From Paragordius varius (lineage: Eukaryota; Animalia; Nematomorpha), in the NCBI GenBank assembly GCA_964247055.1, contig OZ176054.1:3410001-3474000 (forward strand): a DNA stretch of 64,000 bases. Reading direction: 5' to 3'. The notes under the pieces are model-generated. The model saw only the letters and a list, made by a program, of their open reading frames with translations. It was not told the DNA's origin and ran no database searches. Below are positions 17,320 to 49,287 of the stretch, in pieces (within the stretch, counting starts at the first letter, position 1; each line of letters starts with the position of its first letter). The position numbers and the translations under genes are program-made.

Positions 17320-17700
17320 AAGTATTTTATAAATGTTAGTTACAATAAAGCTAAATAAATATAGTAAAAATTTTCCACATTTATTCCGGATTTTAACAAG
17401 ACACTATTTCAAAACGATGAGCAACATTAAACAATTAAAACGCATTTAGTCATTCGTAAACTTTAAAATACCAGTTTTTGTTTGATTTTAAACCCTATCC
17501 ATATTTGCGTCAGAGAGTCAAAAATAAATATAAAATCATAGCGAATGAAAAAGTAAACATACACTAGTTGTGTGTTACCGTACAAATCTAGTTTAAACTA
17601 AAAATATCTAACATTTTTGGTTATCATCATTTAAATGGAAAACAAATATTAACCTTTAAACTAAAGCCAAAACAAATATTTGTCGTTCACCCCTAAAAAT
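17320..17700 (+). repeat. About 380-bp segment duplicated (inverted) at about 30025-30400
   Basis: Long near-identical blocks, e.g. ATCCATATTTGCGTCAGAGAGTCAAAAATAAATATAAAATCATAG and CACTAGTTGTGTGTTACCG, are the reverse complement of 30025-30400. Confidence 0.85.
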
Positions 17701-17756: not shown

Positions 17757-19445
17757 ATGTATCTCCTAAATCAAAGTGCCATTTACGTTTTATCTGTAAT
17801 AATCACTATTGGACTCACAATCGGAAAGATTGATAGTCAAAATGTGCCCACGAAAAAGCCCAAAGCGCCAGAATCTGCTAAAGTTAACGTTTTTTTGCAA
17901 AACCAATTTGAATTTGCAAACGCTATATCCTCTTACGATAGTTTGAGTAAAACCCATGGAAAAAATTATGTCTTTTCGCCAGCATTGGTGCAATTGTCCC
18001 TTGCTTTCCTCCAATACGGGACAACGTGTAAAAATGAATTACATGGTTTAATTCACCGGAAGGAGGCTAAAAAATTATGGAATTATCTCAAGGCCCCGAG
18101 CGATTTAACAACTGACACATCGATACAAATCGTTAATCAGTATGTCATTATGAACGCGGCAAACATACGACCCAGAATAAAAAATTGGTCAGATCTATCC
18201 TTTGGAGTTGATGTGCAAAAACTGGATTTCGATAATCAAACAGCACGAAATGTCATAAATCAAAGGATTAAAGAGTTAACTCATGGCCTTGTACCTGCCT
18301 TCATTGATCCCAGTGCTCATTCCGATACAATGCAATTGATGGCTGTTAATAGCTTGTTCTATAAAAATTTGTGGGAAAAAATCTTTAATTAGTAATACTT
18401 TTTCCTCTTTTTTCATATTGAATGAGGCTATTAATTTTGCCGATATAATTACATAAATGAAAGCAAATCTAGCCGAAACTGATTGTGTTTTTAAGTAACC
18501 ATATTAAAACATTGCATTAAACCCTTAAAACGTTTATAATTCTTGTAAAATTTACTACCAGCTTAGGGTGTTTCAATAAATATTTTTGCACATAAGTAAT
18601 ATAATATATTATTGTTATATAGTGAAATAAGGGAACGCTTTTTCGGAACCGAAAAAGAATCAAACATAAACTTCCTCGTGCAACCGGATCACAGCTATGA
18701 AATGCATCATGTCACCAAAAACAACGTGAATTCAGACGTGTTTGTTTTGCCCTACAAAAATAAATATAAATTGATTATGGTCATGCCCAAGGATAATGAT
18801 TTGACTAAACTTGAAAGCAATTTAGCCAGCTATCCACTATTTCTCCATGATTTAGTAAGCGGTCAAAAGGTAGCGACTATTCGACAAGGTCTCATGATGC
18901 CATATATAAATGTCACTACTGAAGTTGATTTATTAAGCTTGCTGAGTGACAAATTCCAATGCCATAAACCGTAAGTTTTAGATTATTTCAATTATATTCA
19001 TTAAACATTGAATTATTGAAGAAAATTATAAAAATAAATGGGCAAAAAATTCAACATACAGTTTTATTTTTAGTAAAACATTTCCATTTGCGAATCTAAA
19101 ATGGTAGTATAAATAAAATAACGTTTTTAATCTCAAATTAAAAATATTTTGAAAATTGCAATTTTTCAGTCACAATATGCTTTAAATTAATCCCATCTTA
19201 CTTATAGAAAAATGGATGAAATAGTTTGGAATGAAAACCCGCTAACATTTTCAACACTGAAGCACAAAATCCGATTTGGTGTAACGCGAAATGGAACCGA
19301 AGGCAGAAACTTGTTGAAGGGCAATCCGACTCACTTGCACACCAATTATGAATATAACAAAATCGATCACCCGTTCATATTTTATGTGCTCTATGATAAC
19401 CGAATGATTCTGTTTAAAGGACAATATGCCAATCCACAAAATTAA
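17757..19445 (+). CDS. Secreted serpin-family protein, about 406 aa, 3 exons
   Basis: Exons 17757-18391, 18623-18970 and 19208-19445 join in frame (phase 2/2). N-terminal hydrophobic signal-like stretch; serpin motifs NYVFSPALVQLSLAFLQYG, LMAVNSLFYKNLWEKIF, NGTE hinge and C-terminal IDHPFIFYV...ILFKGQYANP. Confidence 0.9.
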
Positions 19446-22481: not shown

Positions 22482-22923
22482 TCACATTTTTTCGACAGGT
22501 TTGATGCCCAAAAGATGGAAACACAATTCCATGACAATGGCTGTCGCTTCACAAATCAATAATCGTTCAATGTTAACTTTAATTATTTTTCCTGGTATAA
22601 ACAAAAGTATAAGGTATATATGATACTGAACTTAAAGGGTATTAAATTAAAATTGTATGAATAAAAATATTAAAAATCTCAAAATCATTGAATGGTATAC
22701 ACAAAAATAAAAAATGAGATAAGATTTGAGAGCTTAACTAGATTTAATATTTATAAAGGACTTACATTGAAAAATAAAATTGTTTGATGGATTTTATAGA
22801 TTATGGAAATATTCAATCATTTGATCGTTTTATATGTAAAAACATAAATTAAAAAATTATCTGTAAATAAGCTATTAAAAGTACTTATTTTTTGCACATA
22901 AATTAATAAAATTATAAAAGTTA

Positions 22924-22958
<35 letters not shown>

Positions 22959-25900
22959 TATATCACTTGATAAAATATTTTATCGGGTTATCAATTATTT
23001 TTGAAAAATAGGCGCAGTACTTTGTTAAAAAAATTGCAGGATTAAGATTTATGGTCGGTTTTTTAATTAAATATGCCCTATAATAAGATTTAAAAACAAA
23101 CTTTCACACAATGGCCAAATGGCTAAAATTAAACCCCAACAGGCAATATCTGGGTTTCTTTTTTTGAAACTAATTTAATCTGCCCAAAAAACTTCTTTTT
23201 GACTCACCATATATAAAAAACTCCGTTTTTTGGCATACAATCTATTAATTATTAACTATCCCTTAATAACTTTAAATAAATACTTATCAATCCTAATCAT
23301 TAGCAATCAATGGCTAAAAAATATACCATTTACAGTTCAAATTCACCCTTAAACAATTCAAATTCACCCTCGAACAATTCAAATACACCCTAAAAATAAA
23401 TTATGAAATTTCGGTCAAAATTTCTTTTTTTAAAAATATAAAAAAGTATAGGTAATATATATTTTAAAAATCACATAAATTATTTTAGGGTGAACTTGAA
23501 TTGTTCAAGGGTGAATTTGAATTGTTCAAGGGTGAATTTAAATTGTTTAAGGGTGAATTTGAACTGTAAATGGTATATAAATTTTTAACTTTGTACCCAC
23601 ACAACATTTTTTACGATTTTAAGGTTAATAAATAAATCTGTTATTACTACCTGAAGCTTTATCCTTTTCCACGCAATAACAATTATCATAGAATTCGGTA
23701 AAGGTACAAGCAATCTCATACAAATAATCACACAATGTATGGATGAGTAAAGTCTCAAAAATCTGAGCTAAGACTTCACCAATGCGACACAGGCATTTAA
23801 CCAATTTATATTCCTTTTCGTGGGCAAATGCAAAACCGTCAAAATTTGATGAGTTCTCTAATAATTTGGCAATATTTGGATCTTGAGTATTTATTTCAAA
23901 CGTATTAGCTAATAAATTATTTTCCATAGTATCAGTCGAATTTGGATAAAAAAACATTTTTTGATCTTTATTGTGTTGTCTTTTACAGTATTGTGACAGA
24001 ATATAGCGCAAAACATTACGATCGTACCCAGCTAAGCGTCCAATTGACCTTAAGTAACAACACGTTAATGAATAATTAAAAAATAGTTTTATGACTCGAA
24101 ATCCAAAAAATTTAGGCTAAGATCCAAAAATGATATATATAATATATAATTTATAAAATATAGTAGTAAATAATGGGTAAATTTTTTATAATCCAGTTTA
24201 TTATAAATAAACAATTTTTTCATAAAAGGTAAAATTTAGATTAATAAATGTCAAACAAAAACCTGATTCGAGTATAAGCGTACAAAAGGTATGCAGCCGT
24301 ATTCCCCTTATCATCCAACATTTTATCGAAAGAAAAAACGTAATCTTTCGTGCGATTGTTGGATAAATCGGCGTATTTTATACAACTTAAAGCTACCGTT
24401 TCTTTGGCACGATTAAATTCTTCTGGTGTCAGGACCTATATGAAATAAAAAAATTTATATTAAAATAATAATTTCGATTCTCGTAAAATTTATTAAATTA
24501 AACTATTAATTATATCTATTATTATTTTCTTTTGTTTCGGTTAATACATTGAAAAAGATACTCTCATGTTTCGAATATTTTGGATATAGTTTAATTTAAT
24601 AAATTTTATGAGAATTCAAATTATTATTTTAACATAAAATATTCATTCTCGTTGACAATATGAAATAAAAAAATTTATACTTAAAAAGTATATTTTAAAT
24701 AATAATAATCAAAATTTAAAAATTTTTTTATACGATAAAAAATAAAAATATTTTCTCCTTAATGAAAAAATTATATATATACTGTATCTCGGCCCTTTTC
24801 GCGTAATTTAGCCTCAGTTCTACGCATCCCCTCAGCAATGAGATCTTGTAATCTTATGGTGTCACCAGATCGTGTTTTAAACTTTTTCCTAGATATTGGT
24901 ATTTATAACACAGATGGTCATAAATCAAAAAATTCTAAATAATAATAATGGGAAATCAAGAGTAGCTTAATTACTTAAGTAGTTAATTATAAAAGGTTGA
25001 ATTGGAATGCAAATAGACATTTTTATTTTCAATTTTTCTTAAATTCGCTAATTCAAACATTTTAGTTAACATAAGTAGATGGTAAAATTTATTTCAATAT
25101 TATTATACTTACTGTTTGTTAAAAGCGAGTTATTTTATCAATTTAATTTTCAGGTTTAGAATAAATTATTTTTCTCAATAATTTCATTAATTTTAATTAA
25201 AGTTAGTTCTTCTTAAAAACGCAAAAAAACCTAAAAATTATAACAAAAAAAAACAATGTTTAGTAAATACTTACTTATCTTCGCCCAAAACTACGCCAAA
25301 AGCGGCATGTTCGAGTCTAATGTTAGGACCTCCCCAGCCCAGTTGTCTACATGCTTGAAATAATTGATTGAAATGCAATCCCTTTTTTCAGACAATAAAT
25401 AAATAAATTAGGTCATTAATTTAAATTTTCACAAATAACTTTAAATTAATAACTAACTGTATGTTTAAAATTTTCTAAAAAATCATATAACAAATAATAT
25501 ATTATTTCAATTATTTATCATTAATTATTTTAAAATGCAAAATATAAGGTAAAACAAAATCCTAAACTAAATTATAAATTTTAATAAATGAATTATCGTA
25601 AATTAAAAGAATACTTGACCAGAATCAACAACGTATATGAGTCTTTCGCCCTTTTCAACATTAATGCGGTGCCTACACAACAATAAAATTTTTGTAAATA
25701 TATCAAGATTAAATAAATATCCATATTAAAATATATTTAATAATTTATTTTTTATTCTTCAATATTTAAAGATAATTTTTTTAACGTTTGAATTTAATGT
25801 ATCTATCGATCATTCAAAGAACTTAAAAGTAGCAAATATTTTTTAAAAAATATTTAAACAGAATAAAGCTTGAAAAATAATTTGAATATTAAATGATATC

Positions 25901-28900
25901 TAAAAAAAAGACAAAACCTTATAGAAGCGATATCCGATGTATCATATGTAAATCCACCATCTGACTTTTGCATAATGAGTGGGACTTCATAACCCTCAAC
26001 AAACATAACTAATCTACCATCTTCATTGACTAGTCTACCTTTATATAAATATTTTGAGTTTAATTTAAATTATTTAAAATTTATTTTGAGTTGTTTAAAA
26101 ACGTGTTGTAAAACAAAATTAACAAAGTATAGTTCCGAAAAAAGAGTTAATGTACACCTACCTACAGTATGAGTAAAAATTCATTGGTAATTTTTTAATT
26201 GAATAATGTCAGAGGGCACATACAGAGCAAGGGCATTTAAGTTTTTTACTTTTTTTTCTGTTTTTCACCAATAATATTACTCTTGGCTGTGAATCAATAT
26301 TTTTATGTAAAAGTAGAAATAATCATCTATTAATACTAAAATTATATTTATAAAAAAATGTAAAAAAATTAGGCAAAAGACCCTGTTTTTGTAATTCTTG
26401 AATGACATCGACCATCATATCTTGATAGAAAGATTCACCTCGAGTCACCAAATCAACGTCCAACAAATCGTAAATGATTTGAAATTCTAAAATATAAAAA
26501 CTTGTAAAGAACTCAAAGCAAAAAAAATATTTTTTGATTAATTAATTGAACAATATTTTTTTGATGCTAGATTTATATATTTAACCGTGGTTTGCAAAAA
26601 AAATTATATTAAACGATTTTTATGGATAAGATAGTTGATTTATATAAATAATAATTTGTCCTTAAAAATATTAATTTATGTTTTGTTTCATCAGTTAAAA
26701 TTCCCTAAATTACTATTAATTTTGCTAAAAAATTCCAAAATTAAACCTTTGAAAGATTCCTGACATATAAGTTGCCAAGCTGCAATTATATTTGGGTCTT
26801 TACTCTGCAGTTTAACAACGTTTTCATAAGCACGTTTTTTAAACACAGGGTCTTCGTCAAATCTTACTTTGGATTCCTGTAAGAAAATGCAATGAATTTT
26901 ATTAGATGCAAACATTTTTTATATATGGGAAAAGAGATAATTAGGATTTTATCTCCAAACTAAAAATGGCAAAAAAAAATCATAGGGTAAATGATTAATT
27001 TGACTGATTACAATATCCAGTAATAATAATAATAATAATAACCAGTAAATCATATAAATTAAACATATAACAAATATAAACAAGGCATATTAACATATTA
27101 TTCATATCATTACACACAAATAGAAAAGTAATTAAATTAAACTCCAATTTCACAGTTTTTTCCACATTAAGTGTGTCTTACCTAATATGATGTTAATTTT
27201 TTAGGATTACAGTTAGTTATGATTGATTGCATTAATACATATCTGGTTAAAAGAGCATAAATAATTTACATTACACGATAAAACTTTTGCAAGTCACCAA
27301 TAGCTGCTGAGGCCGTAAGATAGTTTGGGAAAACATCTTGTAAATGTGCAATCAACATTCCAAACTGCGTTCCCCAATCCCCCACGTGATTTATTCGAAG
27401 GGTCGGATGACCCAAAAATTCAAACAGCCTGCAAATGGAATCGCCTATGATTGTGGATCTAAGCAAAGAAAATACTTCCCTGGATTATATACGTTAAATA
27501 AAAAGATAAATATTTTTTTTTTCGAAAAGACACAACCCTAGATATATCCCACATAAACTATTTGATATGATAAATAATAATAGAATGCATTAAAAATTAC
27601 ATCTATATCGCCTACGCAACCTAGAACAATAATTATATTTGAAAAATATGAATTTTAGAAAAATTATGTATGCCTGTAAGAGAAAAATATTTGTCTTTTC
27701 ATTTTTACGTTTTGTCCGTGTAATTCAAAATTTTTACTGTACATGGCAATTTTTCATTAATTATTGACAGATGCAAATACAGCAAAAAGAAATAATATTT
27801 ATTGGTTAAAATTTAATTTTTATCACTTTTTCTTATTATTAACCAATGCTTCAAATTCTATCTAGTAATGTATAGTTGGCCACACTGTATAATTACTGAT
27901 AAAATTATAAATCGCAAATAGTAAATAATTGAAACAAAATTGCTTGTCTTCGATTCCCAAATACAAGTCGCGTTTATTGACTAAGTTTTGATTTGTTTTT
28001 TTTTTCATAAATCCAAAAAATAATTTTTTAAAACTAATTAGTTTTATATTCAATTAATCAAAATTTTAATATATATATATATATCAGAACAAAATTAGTA
28101 TACTATTAGTATAAACGTTCAAGAGATTGTAAGGATTAGTTATAATTGTAAAGTAAACGCAACTTAAATAATTTTTTTTATCCCAAAACTAATACTTTTT
28201 AATCGAAGAAAAATTGAACAGATTAGTGCATATAAGCGATATTTTGAAAAAAAACCCATAATGATACAACAAATTTTACCTTACCTAAGGTGACCAACAT
28301 GCATTTCCTTGGCTATGTTTGGGGACGAAAGATCCACAATAACTTTGTATTTATAGCTGCCTGTATTGATTGGATTGACATGACCATGCAGAATAAATTG
28401 TGTTATAATTTGCGTTACAAGCGAACGCGACAAACTAATGTTTATAAAACCGGGTTTTGTCACCACCACCGGTTCGGCAATGATTGAATCAAACATCTTA
28501 CGAACGCCATTTTGATCAGCTGTTTTAAGGGTCTTGGGGTCTGATACGGCGGATCCAAAAGATAAATCAATTTGTGAAACGATGCATTTTGCAATACTTT
28601 CGGGACTATTCAACTTATTAATGTGGTCATTACCAGTATTGTTGAATGATGATGATGAATATTCTTTTATTTTCTGGATGATTTATAGTATAAAAATATA
28701 ATTTATTCTGCAAAATTGTACGTAATGTTTTAAACATATCTTTTGTAATTCATTTTTAAATTCATAAAAAATGGAACAATATATGATAGATTAAAAATAA
28801 CATATTTTACTCTCAAAAATAATATGGTTATAAATACCTTTTAATAAATAAATTAATTTTTAGGGAGTACTGTTAATCAATTTGCAAACAATGAAATATT

Positions 28901-29475
28901 TGAAAATCCTAAATTATACAAAACAGAGAATTAAAATTGATGTAAACTTCGAAAAATATAGTCAGGTTTTACAATTAAAATGAATATACATAAAATATCA
29001 TATTAAACTTACTTTAAAAAGGGTCATGGCCGCATTGCACTGATAATCGCTAAATGACGCCTGTTGAGCTCCACAAGCTTGAATATTTGCTGTCGTTGTT
29101 ATATCATATGGCAAAAAAGGGAATGCATCCTGAATAAGCTTCACAAATATTTCATCCAAAATAAATTTTATATTTGGCGTGTATTTGGTGGATAGCTGGT
29201 TAGAATCATCTAATGTCTACACAATATTAATTATAATTAAACTTTAGATAATTGATTCAATTGATATTTTAACTTAATAACAGACGCTTTTATATTTGAA
29301 AATTCTTCGGTTGCTTTTAACTGATTGGAAACATTTTCATCCAAACTTTTTAAGACTTGTATTTCTTTGGTGAATGAAATTAATTGTTTTTCCTACACAA
29401 TTTAAATATAAAAGATACAGCTTCATCGCACAACTTAGAATAACTTTCAATCGTGTTTAATCTTGAAGATTGCAT
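22482..29475 (-). CDS. RARS1: Cytoplasmic arginyl-tRNA synthetase, about 763 aa, 14 exons
   Basis: Exons 29475-29419, 29392-29243, 29216-29013, 28673-28285, 27458-27275, 26876-26747, 26486-26382, 26038-25918, 25672-25615, 25381-25275, 24888-24783, 24435-24263, 24048-23651 and 22591-22482 all join in phase. Motifs [32 protein letters not shown] (HIGH), [62 protein letters not shown] and [10 protein letters not shown]; metazoan N-terminal leucine-zipper extension. Confidence 0.96.
23324..23575. mobile_element. TA-targeting MITE with long TIRs built of 21-bp tandem repeats (in the last RARS intron)
   Basis: TA|TACCATTTACAGTTCAAATTCACCC ... GGGTGAATTTGAACTGTAAATGGTA|TA, with 3-4 copies of a TTGAACAATTCAAATTCACCC-type unit per arm. 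Confidence 0.85.
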
Positions 29476-30024
29476 GATTTAAAAGGTAGCCAATCCTAAA
29501 ATTGTGGTTAAAATATGTTATATTAAAAAACGCCTATTGTACATATTATTTAGGTTTCATTATGATTAAACTATTATAAAAAACAAAATATATAATCTAT
29601 AATTAAAGATCCAAAAGATATTTACTCTATTTCATCACTTTCTAGTCGTCGTGGATGGGTTATTTAGGAATATATCCCATTTTTATCCGTCGTTTGTAAA
29701 GTTCGGGTAGGAAATTTTGCATGTTTTTTGACTTAGATCAGAACAAGGACTGCCATCACGCTTCAGCCATCTATTTCAAACAAGATTGCTTTTTAGTGAG
29801 TTTCCAGATATATGATCAATCGTTAATAGGTTTCTTAATGATAGAGGTGATTTACAATGGTAAAATTATTGTAAATTTAATCATTACAAAGAAAAGAGTG
29901 TAGCAGACCCACGTCGCCACACTCCATTAAAAAGTCCCTTGCTTCCCTTTCATAGACCAGTTAATGATGTTCCAGTGATGGCCGCCTAGTTGCGTCTGGC
30001 GTCTTCCATGTTACATACAAAGTT

Positions 30025-30400
30025 ACTTTTTTAGGGGATAACGACAAATATTTGTATTGGCTTTAGTTTAAAGGTTATTATTTGTTTTCCATTTAAATGA
30101 TAATAACCAAAAAAGTTAGATATTTTTAGTTTAAACTAGATTCGTGCGGTAACACACAACTAGTGTATGTATACTTTGTCATCTATGATTTTATATTTAT
30201 TTTTGACTCTCTGACGCAAATATGGATAAGGTTTAAAATCAAATAAAAATTGGTATTTTAAAGTTTACGAATGGCTAAATGCGTTTTTAATTGCAAAATA
30301 TTACTCATCGTTTTGAGAAGTGTCTTGTTAAAATCCGGAACAAATATTGAATTTTATTAATAAAATTTTACTATATTTATTGTAACTTACTTTTATAAAA
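30025..30400 (-). repeat. About 380-bp segment, second copy of 17320-17700
   Basis: Reverse complement of the serpin upstream region; lies about 550 bp upstream of the RARS ATG. Confidence 0.85.
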
Positions 30401-37900: not shown

Positions 37901-38415
37901 GTAGCTTTCCACATAATTCCCTTATACAGAGTGCTATTATTTAGCAATCTCAATATTTTTAATTGGCTAAAATAGGTTTAATTTACATGATGCTGGTATT
38001 CATCGAAATTTTCATTTTTAGTTACATTAAAATATGGCATACTGTATTGCTATGATATTTTATAGTGAACAGACACCAAAATAAGCCCATGCATATCAAT
38101 AAGTTTTAGTCTCATTAAAAAGTTGAGCATTAGTACCATAAATGAGGGAGAGGTCATTATTAAAGCGATGGGGAAATTAGTTTAATAGAAGCTTTGCAAA
38201 ATATATTTTTACACATTTTTTGCCGTTGAAGGCACGGCCTAATATCTCTTAACTAGCGATGCTAATTCAAAATGAAACATTACCGTATCAGACACATTAA
38301 CGGATTAATTTTTTTTGTTTTAAACTGGATTATTACCATTAAAATCAATATGATTCATTCTTTATGATTATAATACAGTATTATAATCATGTACTATTAT
38401 TGTTGCACGTATAGA

Positions 38416-41400
38416 ATGAGAGCTTCATTTCAACATCCTTACATAAGGATTTTGGAACAGCCTTTGGAACGCGGGTTTCGATTTCGATACAAAAGTGAAG
38501 CGGGAGCCCATGGCGGTCTGCCTGCCGAATCTAGTCAACGCAACAATAAACGGTATCCTACTATCAGGGTATAAACTTTATTTCAACACCAATTTTTATT
38601 TTAATTAACCATTAGATCAAATTTAATCTTGACCATTTCGACTTCACCCTTTTTCTTTATTCCTTTTATAATTTTAGGTACGTAAATATATTTTTTATTG
38701 TATTTTTAATATACCTCTGTCAGCAACTAAACTTATAATTTATAAAATTTTTCATTAAAACTATACACTGGTTTTCTGAAACATAAAAGTATGTTTGGTG
38801 CGCTAATAATCCCAAACATTACAAGAGAAACCCGAAAAGCCATTTTTTAACGGGTAAAATAACTGGAATTTTGTTTGAATTTTTATTAATGTTAAGATTC
38901 AACTTTTATTTAAAGTTAAATGCAATACATCCAATAATATTCAACACTTTATCAGTAACATCTTTCCAACCAAAAACATTTTAATTAATTGCTTTATTCC
39001 AAATATAAAATTAACATTTTAAACGAATAAGCTTGTCATAATTTTGAATTTAATTCTTTTTCTTATATTTTCATTTAATCAAAATATTAAACTTAGTTTG
39101 CTTTAGGTATCTAATTTAATTTAAAACCAATTTTGAAAGGAATCAATATATTTTTTTAATAAATTAAATGAGATAAATTACAAGATTCAATTATATAAAC
39201 GCTCATTTAATATTAAAAATCCTTGAAAATTATGGAATAAAAATATTAAATTAAATCAAAAGTAGAGAATGTTGAGTTTGATTGAAAAATGTTGATTGGA
39301 AAATGTTAAGTTTTTTAAGTGTTGAGTTTGAAAAAAGGGATTACTTATAGATATCTCATTCATATTTTAGGATTAATTACAATTTAATAAAATCTTTGGC
39401 TTTTCGATTGATTTTTAGGGGTAAAGACCTTATATATGATCAAAACAAATTGACGCAATTTGCCTTAATAGAATTTATTTTATAAGATAAAAATTTAAAA
39501 GGTAAGGAACTTTTCCCCCAAGACAAATATTAATCATTTATTCATTAATATTATTTATGAATATAAAATTACTCAATTAAAAAATATTTTGAAAATTTTT
39601 CTACACACCTAGGGTTTCTGACGCAAATCAAATTAAGATAATTATTCCCATAAGTCATTTTTTCGTATAATGCGATTACGCATTTTCTGTTGTTAATATA
39701 CACATGAAATGTCAAATTTGCGTTTAAATTTTTCAAATTCATAATAATTTAGGTTTTAAAGATATTTTTTGGTTACCCTATTTATGTTAAAGAATTTAAA
39801 GATTTTCTTAATTATGGTATCTGGAAAATGGCGTTTAACAAATATTTTCTTTGCCTTGCCACAATTAAAACCCAATATTAATTATTTCTGATTGTAATTA
39901 TAACGAGTTGGTGGGTAAGATTCAGGTAAAAAGTATAAAATATAATAACTGTTTATAATTGTTATATATCGATAAAAATTATTTTTTTAACATGCTCAAT
40001 ATAATTTAAAGGCCAAACTCCTTGTGTCATATCTAGGGTTGTGCATTTGACTGCTTTTTCAAAAAAGTCCGGTCAGACCCAGTCAGACCATGGTCATGAC
40101 CACTTTTTATATAAGTAAATATCATGCGATATTGTGATTTGATGTTTGAACGACACTTGCGTTTCACTAATGTCATGTTTTTTTAAAAAGTTTGTATTAT
40201 ACATTTTTTTATATTTATTATTTAAAAATATTTTCAATCAAATTATCAATAAATTGTTTAATAAATTTAACCATATGTTTGTGGCCTTCTGAATCAAATA
40301 CATAGCTATTACTGGATATTTCATATAAAATTTTACTAATTTTACACTTGCTTTTATCACTTAAATATCCAATATTAAAATGTTTTTTTTCATTTTATTG
40401 GTTCACATAAATTGAATAATTGCATATTTTGCAAAGTGGTGTATTGTTTTTCGAAATAACTGGATATGCTTAAATGCTAATGTTATGGATGCATGTTTAA
40501 CAATTTTATTTTGTTAAATAAGCATAAAATATTTAAAATATTTTTAAAAATATATATAAAAAAACCAATATCTTACTATCTCTCTTACAAAAAAATTTAC
40601 CATCAATTTTTCAAACAATAGCTGTTTTTTTAAATGACCATGGTCAAAAAATAATCAGCACAACCCTAGTCATATCCGAAACGGGACAAAACTGTTTTGA
40701 TATTATAAACCTCATTTATACATATATTGATAAGGATATTTTCTGTATTGCATACGTTATATTCGGTATTAGAATTATTTAAAAAAAATAAATATGTGGA
40801 TATTTTTTGATGTTGTGTAATTCTAGGACTATAAGAGTTCTTTAACTAGCCTGTTTGAATTTCGTTATTATAATGGATATGTAGATATTTAAACTCTAAT
40901 ATGTCATATTTAAAGAGAAAGATTTAAGGTTAAATGCATATAATAAAGTTTTATTTTTATTAACATTCTTCGCCTTCTCTATTACTTTTATCACTGTGAG
41001 CCAAATTCTTTGCTGATTGAATTTGCTTGTTGATCGGTCCTGATAAAGACTTTTTACTGAGATAGATATAAAAGACATTGTTAAACATTTTTAACGGATA
41101 TTTTATATTTACGTTCACATAGATTGAGAATTATATTGGGCCTGCTCGAGTGGAGGTTAGCCTTATGACAAATGAACCAGAACCCCGATTACACGTTCAC
41201 AAATTAGTCGGAAAAAATTGTGATGATGGTATATGCCATGCCACTGTCTTGCCTGAAAATGAGATGTCCATATGGTTTGTCCACAATAAGAATTTTTATA
41301 CAAAAAAATTTAAAGTAGCGTTTCAATTGACTCAATATTATTTAGGTTGTGACCATAAAAATTGGACTCTGCCTTATGATTTTGATATAAAAACACTTTA

Positions 41401-43440
41401 AATTATTCGATGATGCCGATCGTTCGCCTCAATATTCTAATTTGATGTTTGGTTTGCATTTTAAAATAATTTATATTTAACATTAGTTTGGAGACGAACG
41501 AATAAATTTGAGGTGATAGCAATGTTCAGCATTATCGACTTATTAAAAAACTGTTTTTATAACAAACCAGCCTTTAAATACCGTCATCATACCTCAAAAT
41601 GGTATAAATTGCACTTCAAAATTTTTTTTCTAATAATTAAATTTGAAAAAAAATATGCATTTTTCTAAAAATTATTTTTGACAGATATCAATATTTGGGA
41701 TATATTTCAACATTTTAACGTTTAATCACGGCATTTTTGCCTTTATATTAATAGAACTAGATTTCAAAATAGACTCGGGACTTTTGAAGCCCACTCTACG
41801 ATTCAAATTTTTTATGATTATTGTTTTGCCTGTTATATGTAATTTTTTTGGAATGAAGCAATTAGCTTTTACCAAAGAAAATTTATGCAAAATATGCGCA
41901 ATTTTTTTATTTTCTGATATGAAGCACTTACCACAAAAGTGTAAATATCTTTCTTAAATCACTCGTAAGGGTCAAAACCAAGAGCACCATGATTTCTGAT
42001 ACGTTTCCTATCAGAATATTTATACATAAGGATATTATTTCGATTTCAGACTCGATTTAAATAATGGTTCATATAGATTTTTATTAATTTTGGTTATTAG
42101 AATAATTAATTTAATCAGGTCACCGTTTTAAGCGGGTAATTTTAGCCACAATCATAAATAAATCAATACAATAAAATAGATTTTGACGTTATATAAAATA
42201 AATTTGATCGATCTATTAATTACATCATATATATACACTGTGTGCAAAAGTTTTAACAAAATTTTTATTATGAGATAGCTTATGACCAGCATTTTCATTT
42301 GCCGCAAAAAGTTTTATTTGTTTACATCCTAGTTTAATATTGAGAGATAATCAAAATCGGGCAAAAAGGGAACATTAAGGAGAATTCAAAAATAATGATA
42401 AAATTTGAAATAATAGGGTTTATCGTTTTAGAAGATTTCAATATAATAGCCTAAAATCATAGAGTTAGGGTTTCTATAAAATTTCAGCTCAAAAGATGGC
42501 GTTTTTCTTTTATCCCACTCAAAAGACAAAAAAAATTTAATTAACTATATTGAAATAATTTTTCCAATTATTTACTACCTAAACTCACTATTAAAATCTT
42601 AACATTCATATTTTATTAAGTAAAAAAAACTTCTATATCAAAATAAAACCAAACATATTGTTTTTTATTTTTGCATTTTTTTGTCATCTCGTTTATGAGT
42701 GTTTAAAAAATTTATACTCTTTTATTTTGGCTTACCTGAGTAGGAATTATTAAGTATATAATTTATGCAAAAAAAATTAAAAGTAGTGGAATATCAACCA
42801 ACAATCCTTACAAATTCCTGTAACAAGTCTGTTTTATGACAAACTAATATTTGTATTGGGATCGGATTGTTGGTTAATATTCCACTAATTTTAAATGCTA
42901 TTTTGCATGTATAATTTATAATTCGCACTCATGTAAGTAAAAATTTTTTATACACTCACAAACCAGATGACAAAAAAATGTAAAAATAAAAAACAATATT
43001 TTTTGGTTTTATTTTGATATATAAGTTTTTTTACTGAATAAAATGTGTATGTTAAGATTTAGTGAGTTTAGCTGGTAAATAATAAAAAAAATTATTTTAA
43101 TATAGTTTTATAAAATAAAATTTGTCTTGTGAGCGTGCTAAAAGAAAACGCTATCTTTTGAGCTGAAATTTTATGTAAACCCTAACTATATGATTTTAGA
43201 CTTTTAATATATTGAAATTATCTTCTAAAATGATAATAAACGATAATATTTCAGATTTTATCATTATTTTTTGAATTATTCTTAATTATCCTTATTTTTC
43301 ACTTTTTGCCCGATTTCGATTTTCTCTCAATATTTCAAAAACTAGGTTGTCAACAAATAAAAAATTTTGCGGCAAATGAATACGCTGGTCATAAGCTATC
43401 TCATGAAAAAAATTTTTTGTTAAAAATTTTTTTGCACAAA

Positions 43441-43476
<36 letters not shown>

Positions 43477-46400
43477 CAATTGGATATTTCTTGATAATTG
43501 TAATTATAAAATGGACTACTTTTATTTATTACAGTTTTCAAAACTTGGGAATACTGCACGTGCCCAAAAAGGAAGTCTTGCAAATATTGTCTGAAAGATT
43601 GGAAGAGGAATACAAAATACAGAAAATGATGAAGGGTGAGCCCGTTCATGGCGCTGATTTAACAGGTAAAACCTTTTTTTAAAAAAATGGAACTTAAACT
43701 TACCAGATTTTTCTTGTAAAATATAGAAAATTGGTATATATATATATATATATATAATAGCAGTGCTTTAGGTGTTATATTTTGTTATTTGCATCAAAGA
43801 TTTGGAGAAACAAATGATTCGCCAAAATGCCGAAGAAAACGCCAAAACCATGGAACTAAATGTTATCCGATTATGTTTTCAGGCCTTTATTCTGGATTCT
43901 TCTGGAAATGAAATACCAATCCCACCCGTGCTGTCTAACCCCGTTTACGATAGCAGTATTCTATTATTTTATATATTTTGGAAATCTTTAAGCCGAATTT
44001 AAACTAGTGAAAAATTATATTTTTTTAGAATCTCCAAACACAGCAGCACTTAAGATATGTCGTATAGATAAACAAGTTGGCTTTTGCACCGGAAATGAGG
44101 AAATATTTTTGCTATGCGAGCGTGTGCAAAAAGGTTTTATCTATATATTTGAAATTTATCAAAAATATGAAATCAAAAATTAAATTCCAAAATAATTAGA
44201 TGATATTTGTGTTCGTTTCTTCGAACTTGATGACCATGGGAAAGAAATATGGCATGATTATGGAAAATTTAGTATCCATGACGTGCATAAACAGGTAATT
44301 GCAACAGTTTCATGTATAAATATAACATTATTGATTTTATTCTTTAAAATGTAATGATCTCATTAGTATGCCATAGTTTTTCGAACACCACAATACAGAA
44401 TAGTGCCGTTGGCAAAACCTGCCCGGGTTTTCATTCAGCTTCAGAAAAAGAAAGATGGATTAACCAGTGAACCCAAGCCCTTTACCTTTAAACCACATCC
44501 GATTGGTTAGATTAAGTTTTATGACTATTTTTTGATAACATTTCAATATTTTTTTTTCTGCAGGAGAAGATCAAAATGCTGCACGGAAGCGGACTAAATA
44601 TATGTTATCAGTAGCAGACCTCGAAATATTAAATGACGCATTATGTATGATGGAAAACTACACAGGGGATCAAGTGGCCAAGCCTTTAAACAACCCAGTT
44701 GATACTTTGTTGGGAAGGGAAATTGATGAACAATTTTCATCAGTGAACGTGAAAAAGATGCAAGTATCAGAAGGTATGGAATATACCACATTACATTTTA
44801 TATATTTTCTAATATTGTAATAATATTAATAACTGTTTTATAGTATCTTCTAGCCATGAAAAAACTATGTCTCAAGAAAACAAATATGAAGGAGAAATGT
44901 TGACCACAATACAAAGTAACTTGAAACCGACTATACCCGTATATTCTTACGCAGGAACGAAAACCTACGAGAACATGACCCAAACACATCAATATATATT
45001 GCCTAAATCAATTATGAATCGAAGTGACATGAATAATACACCCATGAATGGTGGAACTAATTATATGCCTAGTAATACAAATATTTTTCATCCATTTAAT
45101 CACGAAATATACAACCAACAGTATTTTTGCAACACCACATCATACGTCGCTACTAACCCATTGAATTATCAAACAGGACCAAACATTAACACTTTCAGTC
45201 GCTCAAATAATAATACCTCAAACTTTCTGGGCCCATCCAATCCACCTTTTAATATGGGAACTGTAATCAACCCAAGCGCTCAGGATGGGAGGGAAAGTAT
45301 GTTTAATGGATCCATTGAATCAGAATGCGGATCTAATTATCAAGAGAGTGGAGGAAGTAGCAGTTATAGGGAATCATCCTTAATAAATTTTAACGAAAAC
45401 AAAATTACGGGTATTAGCAAAAATTTGATGTCAAACCCCCAAAACGCATCAACACTTCACCACGCTAATCAGTATGAAAATCACCGCATAAGTAATCTAT
45501 CAACTTTTGGAAAATATAATTCTTCTACCAATTGTAGTGATTCGCTATCATCGTCAAATAGTCCCTTATCACAAGGATCCAATTCGTCAGCCGGTGTTTC
45601 AAACTATCCATCACATCACAATGACAAAGGTGCAAATATTCAATTATCTGAATCCTATAATGACAATAAACAAAATGATACCAACCGAATTAATAGTAAT
45701 TGTTATGGATACAACTTCCGTTTAGAAGAAGAACGATCTCCAATAAAAAATTACCTTACAAATGTGGACATGCAATCAAAAGCACTCAATTTGCATGTCG
45801 ATAAAATGTCGGGAAAATCGTCTGCTTATATAACAGACCAAAAAATGTACAATATTAATTCTATCAAAACAACACAACCAGTTTACTTCTACCCGCCTAC
45901 GAATCATAATGAATTGAGCCATGAAAGTATAATTGTCATATAATAGTTTTAGAATTTTTAAACAGCTAATCAAAATGGAATTTTATTGAAATAACCAGTC
46001 TTCCAAACAATTTAATAAAATTTAGCCATCCAAAGTTAAAATTTAAAAAATATAGGGTAGGGTATAATAAAATAAATCAATAAAAAATGAAACTTATATA
46101 GGAAGACATATTGGGTACACCAACTTTAATATATTAGGAATCTTTAGCGTACAGAATTTTATATGTGTAAACAAGGGTGATTAATTCGATACATCTACAT
46201 GGACTTTATGTCTAAACAATTTTAATTAAATTATAGTAATAGATTGCTTCATATCATCGGGCATTTTCTAAAATGGTTCGTTTCTATACGATGATAACTT
46301 TTATTTCGGTTAGAGCTTTGTAACCTATTTTCCCATCAATATTACAATCTTATATGCTTTACACCGATGGGTAGGTATAGTCAGCAACAAACGTGTAGGT

Positions 46401-49287
46401 TGAATAACGAGAGTTGTGAATTTTATTATCATTATAATTAATATTTAATTATTAAATTGATTTAGATCCGTTGAATATGGCTAGCGTTCCACAACAAAAT
46501 CAAAACAACGGTCAATCTACAGGGAATCCTATTCTACGCGCAAGAAGTCACAGAGGTTTTAAAAATATCAATTTTATTTTCTGATAAAAGAGTTAAATAA
46601 ATTAACTATGAATGTATGAAATGGATTTTTTTTATTAGCTTTAAACAACTTTTGGTAAGCCCATATAATTAAATTATTTTTACTGAAATTAAACGACACC
46701 TAAACACGCTGTCCTTATAATCCTTTAAATATTTTATTTCAATTTTCCGTGTTTAGATGCACCATCAGTAAATCCTACACCAACCCATAATAATAATAGG
46801 ACTAATAATGATACCGCTAACATCGATGTCAACAATTTAACCGAACAAATTAATGACCTTGCTATCGTTAGAGAGAATTCTTTGATTCGAAACACAAATT
46901 CTTCAAGCAGATCAACTCAATTTTCTACATCACATGATTCGGCTCTTGAAGACTCCAGCAGTGCAGAAGATGTCAGTTTTCATGCCAGAAACAGTAACCA
47001 AAGAAACAATATGGTTATAAAAGCAAGCACCCTGTTTGAAACTTTGAAAGTTTATGTCCAAAATGTAAATCCAATCCCTTTGCTAGCGCTTTTTACCAAT
47101 TATATGATGATACCTGATGCAGATGGCAATATGTGAGTGTTTTAAACTTTCCTATAAATTTAAAGTTCCACTTATTACTTATTTTAATTCTTTTTTGTTT
47201 AAGGTTGTTACATCTCTCAATTTTGGCTGGAAACGAGGAAATATCAATGGCCATTTTACATTCCTTGCATAAAATGCATCGTGATAACATAAAAGCCATT
47301 TTGGAGCATTATAACAATGAACAAAGGGTAAAAATTTGTATTAAATTGTTAATTTCAGGGGTGTTAAATTAACGACCAACAATATCTATTTTATATGAAA
47401 ATCATCTTTTTAAAGTGTGTTAAAACGTCAATTAAGCTTTACTTGTAGTATTATTATATATCGTGTTAGTATATAAATAATGTTAAAAATCAATTATTGT
47501 TACATATATTTTCTACTTTTAGTATTTATAATTTAAAATAAGCCTACATCCCTATCGTATTCGCGATTTGATTCACAATTAATGGGAACATTATTTAGTT
47601 TCTAAACATATTTACCTTTAAATCATGCCTTTTATACAATTTTGTCAAATTACCTAAGAAATCTGGTGTTTTCCGTGCTTAAGAATAAAAATTTTATACA
47701 TCCAGCTAATTCCAAAATTAGACGTCTTTTTATAAATTTGACCCTAGGTTCAAATTTAATCACCGCTTATTTAAATGTGGCTTTTATTGTCATATCTGTC
47801 GTTAAATTTAATTTTTAATGCTAACTTTTTCATTTCGCACACTATACGCCGGAAACATTTCTTTGGGACCTAAAATTTTTTTATAAAGATTATAAAATAC
47901 TAAGATTAAAATAAGTATTGGTTAATTAATTGGTAGGTAACAGTTTGCTTATAATAACAAAATAATGAATTACAATATCAAACCATTTTTATTATACTTA
48001 CCAAGAAGCTGAATCAAAAAAAGATTTTCATGTAAATTTAATTCTTTTTACATTGTTTAATGAAACATTTTGCATTTAAATATATCCTCAAGAGAATTTT
48101 AGAACATTTTCCCGTAGCACAAACAAAAATTCTATATTTTCCGAATTATATACTTTAAAATATTAGACTCCTGTACATTTGGCTTGTATGAAGGATATGT
48201 GCCATTTGCTCAATACTATAACTAAACTTTACCATTTGGATTTCGGACTTTTGGATGAGAACGGAAATAGCATAATTCACATTTGTGCCGCATATAAAAG
48301 TTATACATGTTTTGAGCTTTTGCTGCAATACAACCAACAACTATGTGCTATCGACTTTATGAATGCTATTAATTTGGCAAATTATTCAGGTAAATATATG
48401 GATCCCGGCGGTTCGATTTTATCAATTCACAAATACAAAGTTTATAATAAATTGTAAATTAAAAGTTTATGATTCAAAACCCAATTTTTTTGAGTTTCTC
48501 TTATATGATTGCTTAATTGTTTTAAACAGGTAAAGCAGTCCTTCATTTAATAGCTGAGGACTGCGATTTCCCACTGTGTTTAGCCAAAAAACTTTTTATA
48601 TCCGCCTCCCTTTCACAAAATAATGGTAAAAATATAAATGTGGAAAAGAGTTGTATAGAAGAAAGCTTAGAACCACCTTCGACTCCTGGGAATAATACAG
48701 TCATTAATATTAATATTCCGGATGGAAAATCTGGTGCTGTGCCCTTATACGTGGCACTTCAAAACTGTAATTATGCAATGGTTGAATTACTACTTTCCCA
48801 GGTATATATTTGATATTTAGTGAATAATACATATTCCTTATTATTTTTATAATTTGTATTTATTTATGTGTGCATTTTGAAGTCTATTGTTTTAGCAAGA
48901 ATAATTATGATATATATATTATCAGAGCTATATTTTTGTTGTGAGACATTTTGTTGCAAAGACTTAGTTGTCGATTTTTTTCTTACCAGGCAAATGAATA
49001 TTCATTACTTTTTAATCAAAATATCCAAACTTTAGCCTGGAATAATACTTAATGCCCAAACATTTGATGGAAAAGGACCGCTCGATATAGCATTGGCAAA
49101 TAAGGCACCTCAAAACATTGTTACATTGCTTAAGGGAAATGGTGCTCTCTCGTTCACAACTAATAATCAATCACATATACACCCAAAAAATGAATGGACC
49201 CAAATCGAAACTTCTGGAGAATCAGATAGCGAAAGTGATGAAGACTCCTGTAAAAATTCGGATAATGATAATACAACGACTGAATAG
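38416..49287 (+). CDS. NFKB1: NF-kB p105/p100/Relish-type precursor (RHD, IPT, NLS, long linker, 6 ankyrin repeats), about 1186 aa
   Basis: Exons 38416-38568, 41123-41274, 43535-43665, 43800-43955, 44029-44133, 44200-44294, 44367-44505, 44564-44773, 44844-45926, 46466-46555, 46757-47132, 47204-47327, 48167-48389, 48530-48801 and 49036-49287 join in phase (3561 nt). Motifs [75 protein letters not shown], and ankyrin cores LLHLSI, TPVHLAC, IIHICA, VLHLIA, PLYVAL, PLDIAL. An extra upstream exon is possible because the ATG follows an AG acceptor. Confidence 0.93.
40034..40668. mobile_element. hAT-type MITE (635 bp) in the first NF-kB intron
   Basis: Perfect 11-bp TIR TAGGGTTGTGC / GCACAACCCTA and perfect 8-bp TSD GTCATATC at 40026-40033 and 40669-40676. 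Confidence 0.9.
42236..43441. mobile_element. About 1.2-kb foldback (palindromic) element, Tc1/mariner-like ends, in an NF-kB intron
   Basis: Arms at about 42236-42807 and 42864-43441 are reverse complements along their whole length (roughly 80% identical by eye), with a 56-bp spacer and TA flanks. Confidence 0.85.

Follow-up and report, generated by a model that had tools for sequence, protein, structure and literature searches.

Two putative 26-nt introns at ancestral positions in the cytoplasmic arginyl-tRNA synthetase gene of the hairworm Paragordius varius

In a survey of 51 animal genomes, introns shorter than 30 nt were found only in myxobolids and Dicyema, both of which have reduced genomes (PMC13644364, Mol Biol Evol 2026). 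In these parasites, which include Dicyema japonicum and the myxobolid myxozoans, the median intron is 22–27 nt. As evidence for animal introns of this size, the survey accepts positions that are conserved and flanked by conserved exons, donors reduced to GTa, and A residues ahead of the AG (PMC13644364). No nematomorph is named in its text, and the hairworm genome papers that we searched contain no discussion of introns.

Tiny introns are also known from ciliates, being ~25 nt in Paramecium and 15–16 nt in Stentor (PMC8997360, PMC9505925). Ciliates are unicellular; almost every intron of their compact somatic genomes is tiny, and they differ in genetic code and in the set of spliceosome proteins as well.

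Here, we describe two 26-nt segments of the gene encoding cytoplasmic arginyl-tRNA synthetase (RARS) in Paragordius varius. With the introns of myxobolids and Dicyema they share GT-AG ends, a length of 20–30 nt, conserved positions, a donor close to GTa, the lack of a polypyrimidine tract and A residues a few bases before the AG. With ciliate introns they share a similar length, AT-richness, premature stops on retention and, as we propose, recognition by intron definition. Unlike in the parasites, which belong to other lineages, only the first 2 of the 13 RARS introns are tiny, and the surrounding DNA is gene-poor with 26% GC.

The RARS gene and its two short segments

The DNA analysed is a stretch of 64,000 nt (contig OZ176054.1, positions 3,410,001 to 3,474,000; hereafter, the window). 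Its GC content is ~23–34% in 2-kb steps and ~26–27% overall, against 26.93% in the hairworm Gordionus montsenyensis. Animal genes in it include a serpin, an NF-kB/Rel-like gene, a Frizzled-type cysteine-rich domain and, on the minus strand (29475..22485), an intact cytoplasmic RARS. Using tblastn with two full-length orthologues (Biomphalaria glabrata, P0153, and a 672-aa protein, P0161), all parts of RARS were found, in order, between 29392 and 22485. Matches on the locus covered residues 14–672 of P0161. Single exons matched Pfam families PF00750 (tRNA-synt_1d, catalytic) and PF05746 (DALR, anticodon-binding), and a PDB search aligned exon 3 with residues 84–136 of human RARS (chain 4r3z_B). 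The C-terminus reads GIKPVEKM. Hence, the gene has the parts of a metazoan-type cytoplasmic class I enzyme: a catalytic domain with HVGH, a DALR domain and an N-terminal helical extension with KLKYxLNxLK. Human and other vertebrate RARS1 have the same N-terminal helical region, with the zipper mainly in exon 2.

Enumeration of frame-keeping junctions identified 13 introns in RARS. The first two are 26 nt each and fall far below every one of the other 11 (214–1059 nt). GC content is 0.14–0.23 in the introns, including the tiny pair (0.15–0.19), and 0.24–0.44 in the exons. Coordinates are listed in Table 1.

Table 1. Positions of RARS features and of neighbouring elements in the window
Feature	Position	Strand	Length	Description
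RARS exon 1, coding part	29419..29475	-	19 codons	ATG plus 18 codons (19 aa), M to CDEA; A at -3 of the ATG
Intron 1 (putative)	29393..29418	-	26 nt	GTATCT...TTGTGTAG; phase 0; GC 0.19; TTGTGTAG at 29393-29400
RARS exon 2	29243..29392	-	50 codons	Coiled-coil/leucine-zipper part, EKQL...NQLSK; tblastn support with Biomphalaria and P0161
Intron 2 (putative)	29217..29242	-	26 nt	GTTTAA...TTGTGTAG; phase 0; GC 0.15; TTGTGTAG at 29217-29224
RARS exon 3	29013..29216	-	68 codons	Begins TLDD; followed by GTAAGT
Intron 3	28674..29012	-	339 nt	GTAAGT...CCAG; phase 0
Rest of RARS	22485..28673	-		Exons 4–14; introns of 214–1059 nt; catalytic and DALR domains intact
Third TTGTGTAG acceptor	25673..25680	-		End of the 245-nt intron 8
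Predicted RNA hairpin	29204..29253	-		10-bp helix around intron 2
Extra codons in RARS exon 13	~23880-24030	-	~50 codons	Between SIGRLA and DPNIAKLL
Last RARS intron, repeat region	23310-23610			21-nt tandem-repeat arrays at 23332-23395 and 23487-23567
AT-rich intronic stretch	24126-24163			Masked or skipped in the later sequence searches
Repeat, copy 1	17400-17700	+	~300 bp	Just upstream of serpin ATG at 17757 (+)
Repeat, copy 2	30020-30320	-	~300 bp	Just upstream of RARS ATG at 29475 (-)
NF-kB/Rel-like gene	38389-49000	+		Ankyrin repeats; example of a short intron at 44296-44366

A preliminary description of this DNA had proposed that the RARS N-terminus can be read through only if two GT..AG segments are removed. 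The minus-strand letters and the translations agree with this: the frame from the ATG reaches the conserved core only without the two segments. As also stated there, both segments are exactly 26 nt long and in phase 0, and they have the last 9 nt in common (ATTGTGTAG). Retention soon meets a stop, after 12 codons in the case of intron 1 and as early as the second codon in intron 2. Exons 2 and 3 each have their frame shut directly upstream by the TAG of the acceptor. No Met occurs in exon 2; as described before, the next one in frame lies within DYQCNAAM.

Both segments have the attributes of U2-type introns, namely GT and AG ends, a frame that is colinear with orthologues once they are removed, and a position and phase shared with those orthologues. 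They also resemble the described ultra-short introns, being under 30 nt with reduced donors (GTATCT and GTTTAA) and an AG acceptor. Short introns are not the local majority, given the 11 long introns of the same gene and introns of ~70–90 nt in the NF-kB-like neighbour. On this evidence, drawn from sequence, we consider it very probable that both segments are genuine, constitutively removed U2-type GT-AG spliceosomal introns, the first two of an intact cytoplasmic RARS gene.

Three other observations were made within RARS. Exon 13 contains ~50 extra in-frame, stop-free codons that are absent from orthologues. They may be an insertion specific to the lineage, within the anticodon-binding region, or else an overlooked in-frame intron (G^GTACGA ... 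CAAG^AT; here and below a caret marks the splice junction). In the last intron, a 21-nt unit is tandemly repeated in two arrays of opposite orientation. An AT-rich stretch lies in another part of the intronic sequence (Table 1).

Intron positions in RARS orthologues

The preliminary description had named the intron positions of RARS orthologues as a check. We collected orthologues by a representative search with exon 4 and used the gene DNA of five of these or related ones, in which exons were placed by exact peptide matches. Comparisons were made exon by exon, on single exons. Codon and phase coincided with the P. varius segments at site 1 in 4 orthologues and at site 2 in 5. In P. varius, site 1 reads CDEA^EKQL and site 2 is followed by TLDD, with 26 nt at each. 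The corresponding junctions are AMKA^EAMIG (30,512 nt) and KLKYQMNHLKR^SLQ (909 nt) in the annelid Owenia fusiformis, AEKA^EKEI (1,220 nt) and KLKFQIVHLRR^NIA (408 nt) in the brachiopod Lingula, TDDA^ENEV (5,693 nt) and KLKHRLAILKR^ALH (5,525 nt) in the insect Homalodisca, and VQQQ^EKHI (2,726 nt) and KLKYRLNILKR^SLQ (647 nt) in the gar Lepisosteus. In the fish Coryphaenoides, whose N-terminus is badly modelled, only site 2 was placed (173 nt). Hence, orthologous introns at the two sites span 173 to 30,512 nt. All those resolved are in phase 0, as in the window. The boundaries common to Owenia, Lingula, Homalodisca and gar are A^E and KLKYxLNxLK(R/K)^xL, both in phase 0. The position of intron 3 is also conserved, in Owenia, gar, Lingula and Coryphaenoides.

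The public RARS model of Coryphaenoides rupestris (L002, 230-457) opens with 76 uninterrupted codons, the first part of which (MATEGGGVIEFDGVVV...) resembles intron read as coding sequence. Intron 1 was probably missed in that annotation.

Exon lengths and spacing agree with the junctions. Exon 1 has 19 codons in the window and 11–16 in the orthologues, where it ends just before the E. Exon 2 has 50 codons against 45–54 in the orthologues and aligns end to end, as does exon 3. From junction 2 to the motif (D/E)(I/V/L)F there are 24 residues in the window, Biomphalaria, Lingula and gar. The spliced N-terminus had been described as the metazoan zipper region, and the alignments support this, with the TL after junction 2 falling where orthologues read KLKYQLNHLKN^YL, KLKYQMNHLKR^SL and KLKYRLNILKR^SL.

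With exon 2 alone, no RARS match was found in the PDB, because the coiled coil is too weak as a query. In protein collections searched with exon 4 (representative and word search) and with a profile of one full-length orthologue plus single exons, neither a RARS from a close relative nor an annotated protein of this genome was found.

The junctions bear on whether the 5′ gene model is correct. A first coding exon farther upstream could instead be spliced to the acceptor at 29393 across a long intron, or the in-frame introns could be longer than 26 nt (47 nt at site 2; 65–140 nt with loss of part of exon 2). There are indeed 13 and 9 frame-keeping GT/GC-AG combinations at sites 1 and 2, respectively. 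They include the 47-nt variant, with acceptor CTAACCAG, which is the only other in-frame choice from the intron 2 donor and costs 7 residues. However, only the 26-nt versions keep the conserved A^EK and ^TL junctions and the orthologous spacing. The start codon of exon 1 is in good context, the length of that exon is like that of orthologous first exons, and the frames of both following exons are shut exactly at the acceptors. We therefore regard a misplaced 5′ model as very unlikely.

The assembly itself might be at fault, with longer introns collapsed to 26 nt or the locus being a degenerating copy. Of the sampled words of the stretch, the two best sequencing runs contain fractions of 0.85 and 0.82, rather than all. 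But a collapse would have to leave a canonical GT and AG, an equal length and the correct phase, and to do so twice. Furthermore, the ~2 kb of remaining RARS coding sequence is open and conserved. An artefact of this kind is thus extremely improbable.

Codon and phase coincide twice, independently, and the frame of an otherwise intact gene has to be restored. This leaves little room for anything except real introns of the bilaterian ancestor that have shrunk to 26 nt. What the locus contributes is this conservation of intron position across three other phyla and vertebrates.

Proposed mode of removal and the idea of a retention switch

We favour the view that both segments are ancient bilaterian introns whose length would have fallen, in this lineage, to roughly the minimum that its spliceosome can handle. 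Introns farther along in RARS would have stayed at hundreds of bases. Each tiny intron would be recognised as a single unit, by intron definition, through a minimal GT(A/T) donor. Such minimal donors are also found in many of the long introns of RARS. The branch adenosine may lie ~10–11 nt before the AG, a guess from the motifs TTAAT in intron 2 and TTTAAA in intron 1. TTAAT fits yUnAy, with the A at -11; intron 1 has just TTTAAA at the same distance. Between branch and AG the tract is TTGTG, which is not pyrimidine-rich, and no polypyrimidine tract is present. The gap from donor to branch would then be only ~15 nt. For the human spliceosome the minimum distance is ~46 nt, and splicing fails below it (PMC11291888). 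If the putative branch sites are right, the splicing machinery of this lineage must differ in that respect. Proximity to the cap may, more speculatively, aid the recognition of introns so weak and small.

Other modes of removal were considered. The intron of mammalian XBP1 that is cleaved by IRE1 is likewise 26 nt and, as with XBP1/HAC1 generally, its retention shifts the frame. The P. varius segments have canonical GT..AG ends and ancestral positions instead. Their junctions (GCT^GTA..TAG^GAA and AAA^GTT..TAG^ACA) and predicted folds contain no CNG^CNG or CNGNNGN loops and no twin stem-loops, in line with the earlier statement that they are not of the IRE1/XBP1 type. There was also no bulge-helix-bulge motif, the feature of a tRNA-endonuclease-type intron.

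A U12-type intron was also examined as a candidate and rejected. This type requires the donor RTATCCTT and the branch sequence TCCTTAAC 10–15 nt from the 3′ end. Intron 1 starts with GTATCTTTT, one mismatch away from the U12 donor GTATCCTTT, but the mismatch falls on the near-invariant C. Intron 1 has GTATCTTT and no TCCTTAAC; intron 2 has neither element and no other U12 feature. The orthologous introns begin GTATGT, GTTAGT, GTCAGC and GTAAAT, which are U2-type. Since GT..AG ends and conserved positions suit ordinary splicing, removal by any of these routes, or by DNA elimination, has in our judgement a next to negligible probability.

Since each intron has a length not divisible by 3 and introduces an early stop, an unspliced transcript would be non-productive. 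It would probably be degraded rather than give a zipper-less enzyme. With a frameshift, an early stop and no usable downstream start on retention, splicing would have to be efficient.

The preliminary description had raised two further ideas, neither of which found support. The first was a 3′ signal specific to the tiny introns. Their common ending TTGTGTAG also ends the 245-nt intron 8 of RARS, so the motif is not specific. There are 4 copies of TTGTGTAG in the window against 1.13 expected, and 3 of the 4 are RARS acceptors (minus strand). TGTGTAG was not found at the acceptors of the neighbouring genes examined. The threefold use in RARS could reflect a gene-specific UG-rich element or binding site, or chance.

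The second idea was that retention acts as a switch for the zipper that joins RARS to the multisynthetase complex. In such a scheme the introns are real and their removal regulated, with retention lowering the amount of full-length RARS or stripping the zipper. Location is all that was found in its favour: both sites flank the zipper exon. The repeated TTGTGTAG acceptor could be a site for a UG-binding factor, but its third copy sits at an intron in the catalytic part. Intron 2 lies within a predicted hairpin formed by pairing of the final 10 nt of exon 2 with nt 4–13 of exon 3 (minimum free energy -13.3 kcal/mol, z -3.05). Of 200 shuffled sequences, 2 folded as well, equivalent to ~1 in 100, and the hairpin is confined to one intron: intron 1 with its flanks gave no comparable fold (z +0.69).

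The frame argues against a switch. With either intron retained, a stop follows after 12 codons or 1 codon, and there is no in-frame Met ahead of DYQCNAAM. Hence, a zipper-less enzyme cannot result from retention. In mammals, the free, zipper-less form of RARS arises from a second in-frame start codon. The window gene, in contrast to mammalian RARS1, lacks an in-frame Met downstream of its start as far as DYQCNAAM, which seems to close that route as well. We conclude that regulated retention is very improbable and that constitutive removal of both introns accounts better for the sequence.

Size classes in the window and significance

We looked for further tiny introns in the window. A census of GT..AG segments of 18–60 nt, based on open reading frames only and covering the whole window, gave 167 candidates with a flat length distribution and was too noisy to reveal a class. 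In the neighbouring NF-kB/Rel-like gene, candidates of 26–37 nt were rejected, being better explained by introns of ~70–90 nt. That gene, which encodes ankyrin repeats, combines such introns with multi-kb ones, which suggests that a third, small size class exists, intermediate between the 26-nt introns and the long ones.

A repeat of ~300 bp occurs in two copies in the window. They are ~90% or more identical, with 88% mean column identity over a 386-column alignment. Each copy is found shortly before the start of a gene, the serpin in one case and RARS in the other, and has the same orientation as that gene (Table 1). The repeat may be a transposon-derived promoter region. An Rfam search of positions 24200-64000 gave no matches.

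A class of tiny introns in this lineage would be new to the literature, and on the sequence comparisons the RARS locus is a well-supported candidate member. In a broader form, the proposal is that the spliceosome of the lineage removes introns of 21–31 nt with ~15 nt between donor and branch, preferentially near the cap, in otherwise long-intron genes of a repeat-rich genome. We put the chances of this at about even. If true, animal introns shorter than 30 nt would have arisen independently a third time, and for the first time without a tie to genome compaction. This would also mean that the place of an intron in its gene can influence how far it is minimised.

Two ancient introns that reach kilobases in other phyla thus appear as 26 nt here, next to introns of hundreds of bases in RARS itself. 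Should their splicing be confirmed by RNA, standard gene finders and RNA aligners, with a minimum intron of 30–60 nt, would leave many gene models of the genome truncated or broken. The locus would then offer a natural system for asking what sets minimal intron size, and extreme intron shrinkage would need no genome compaction.
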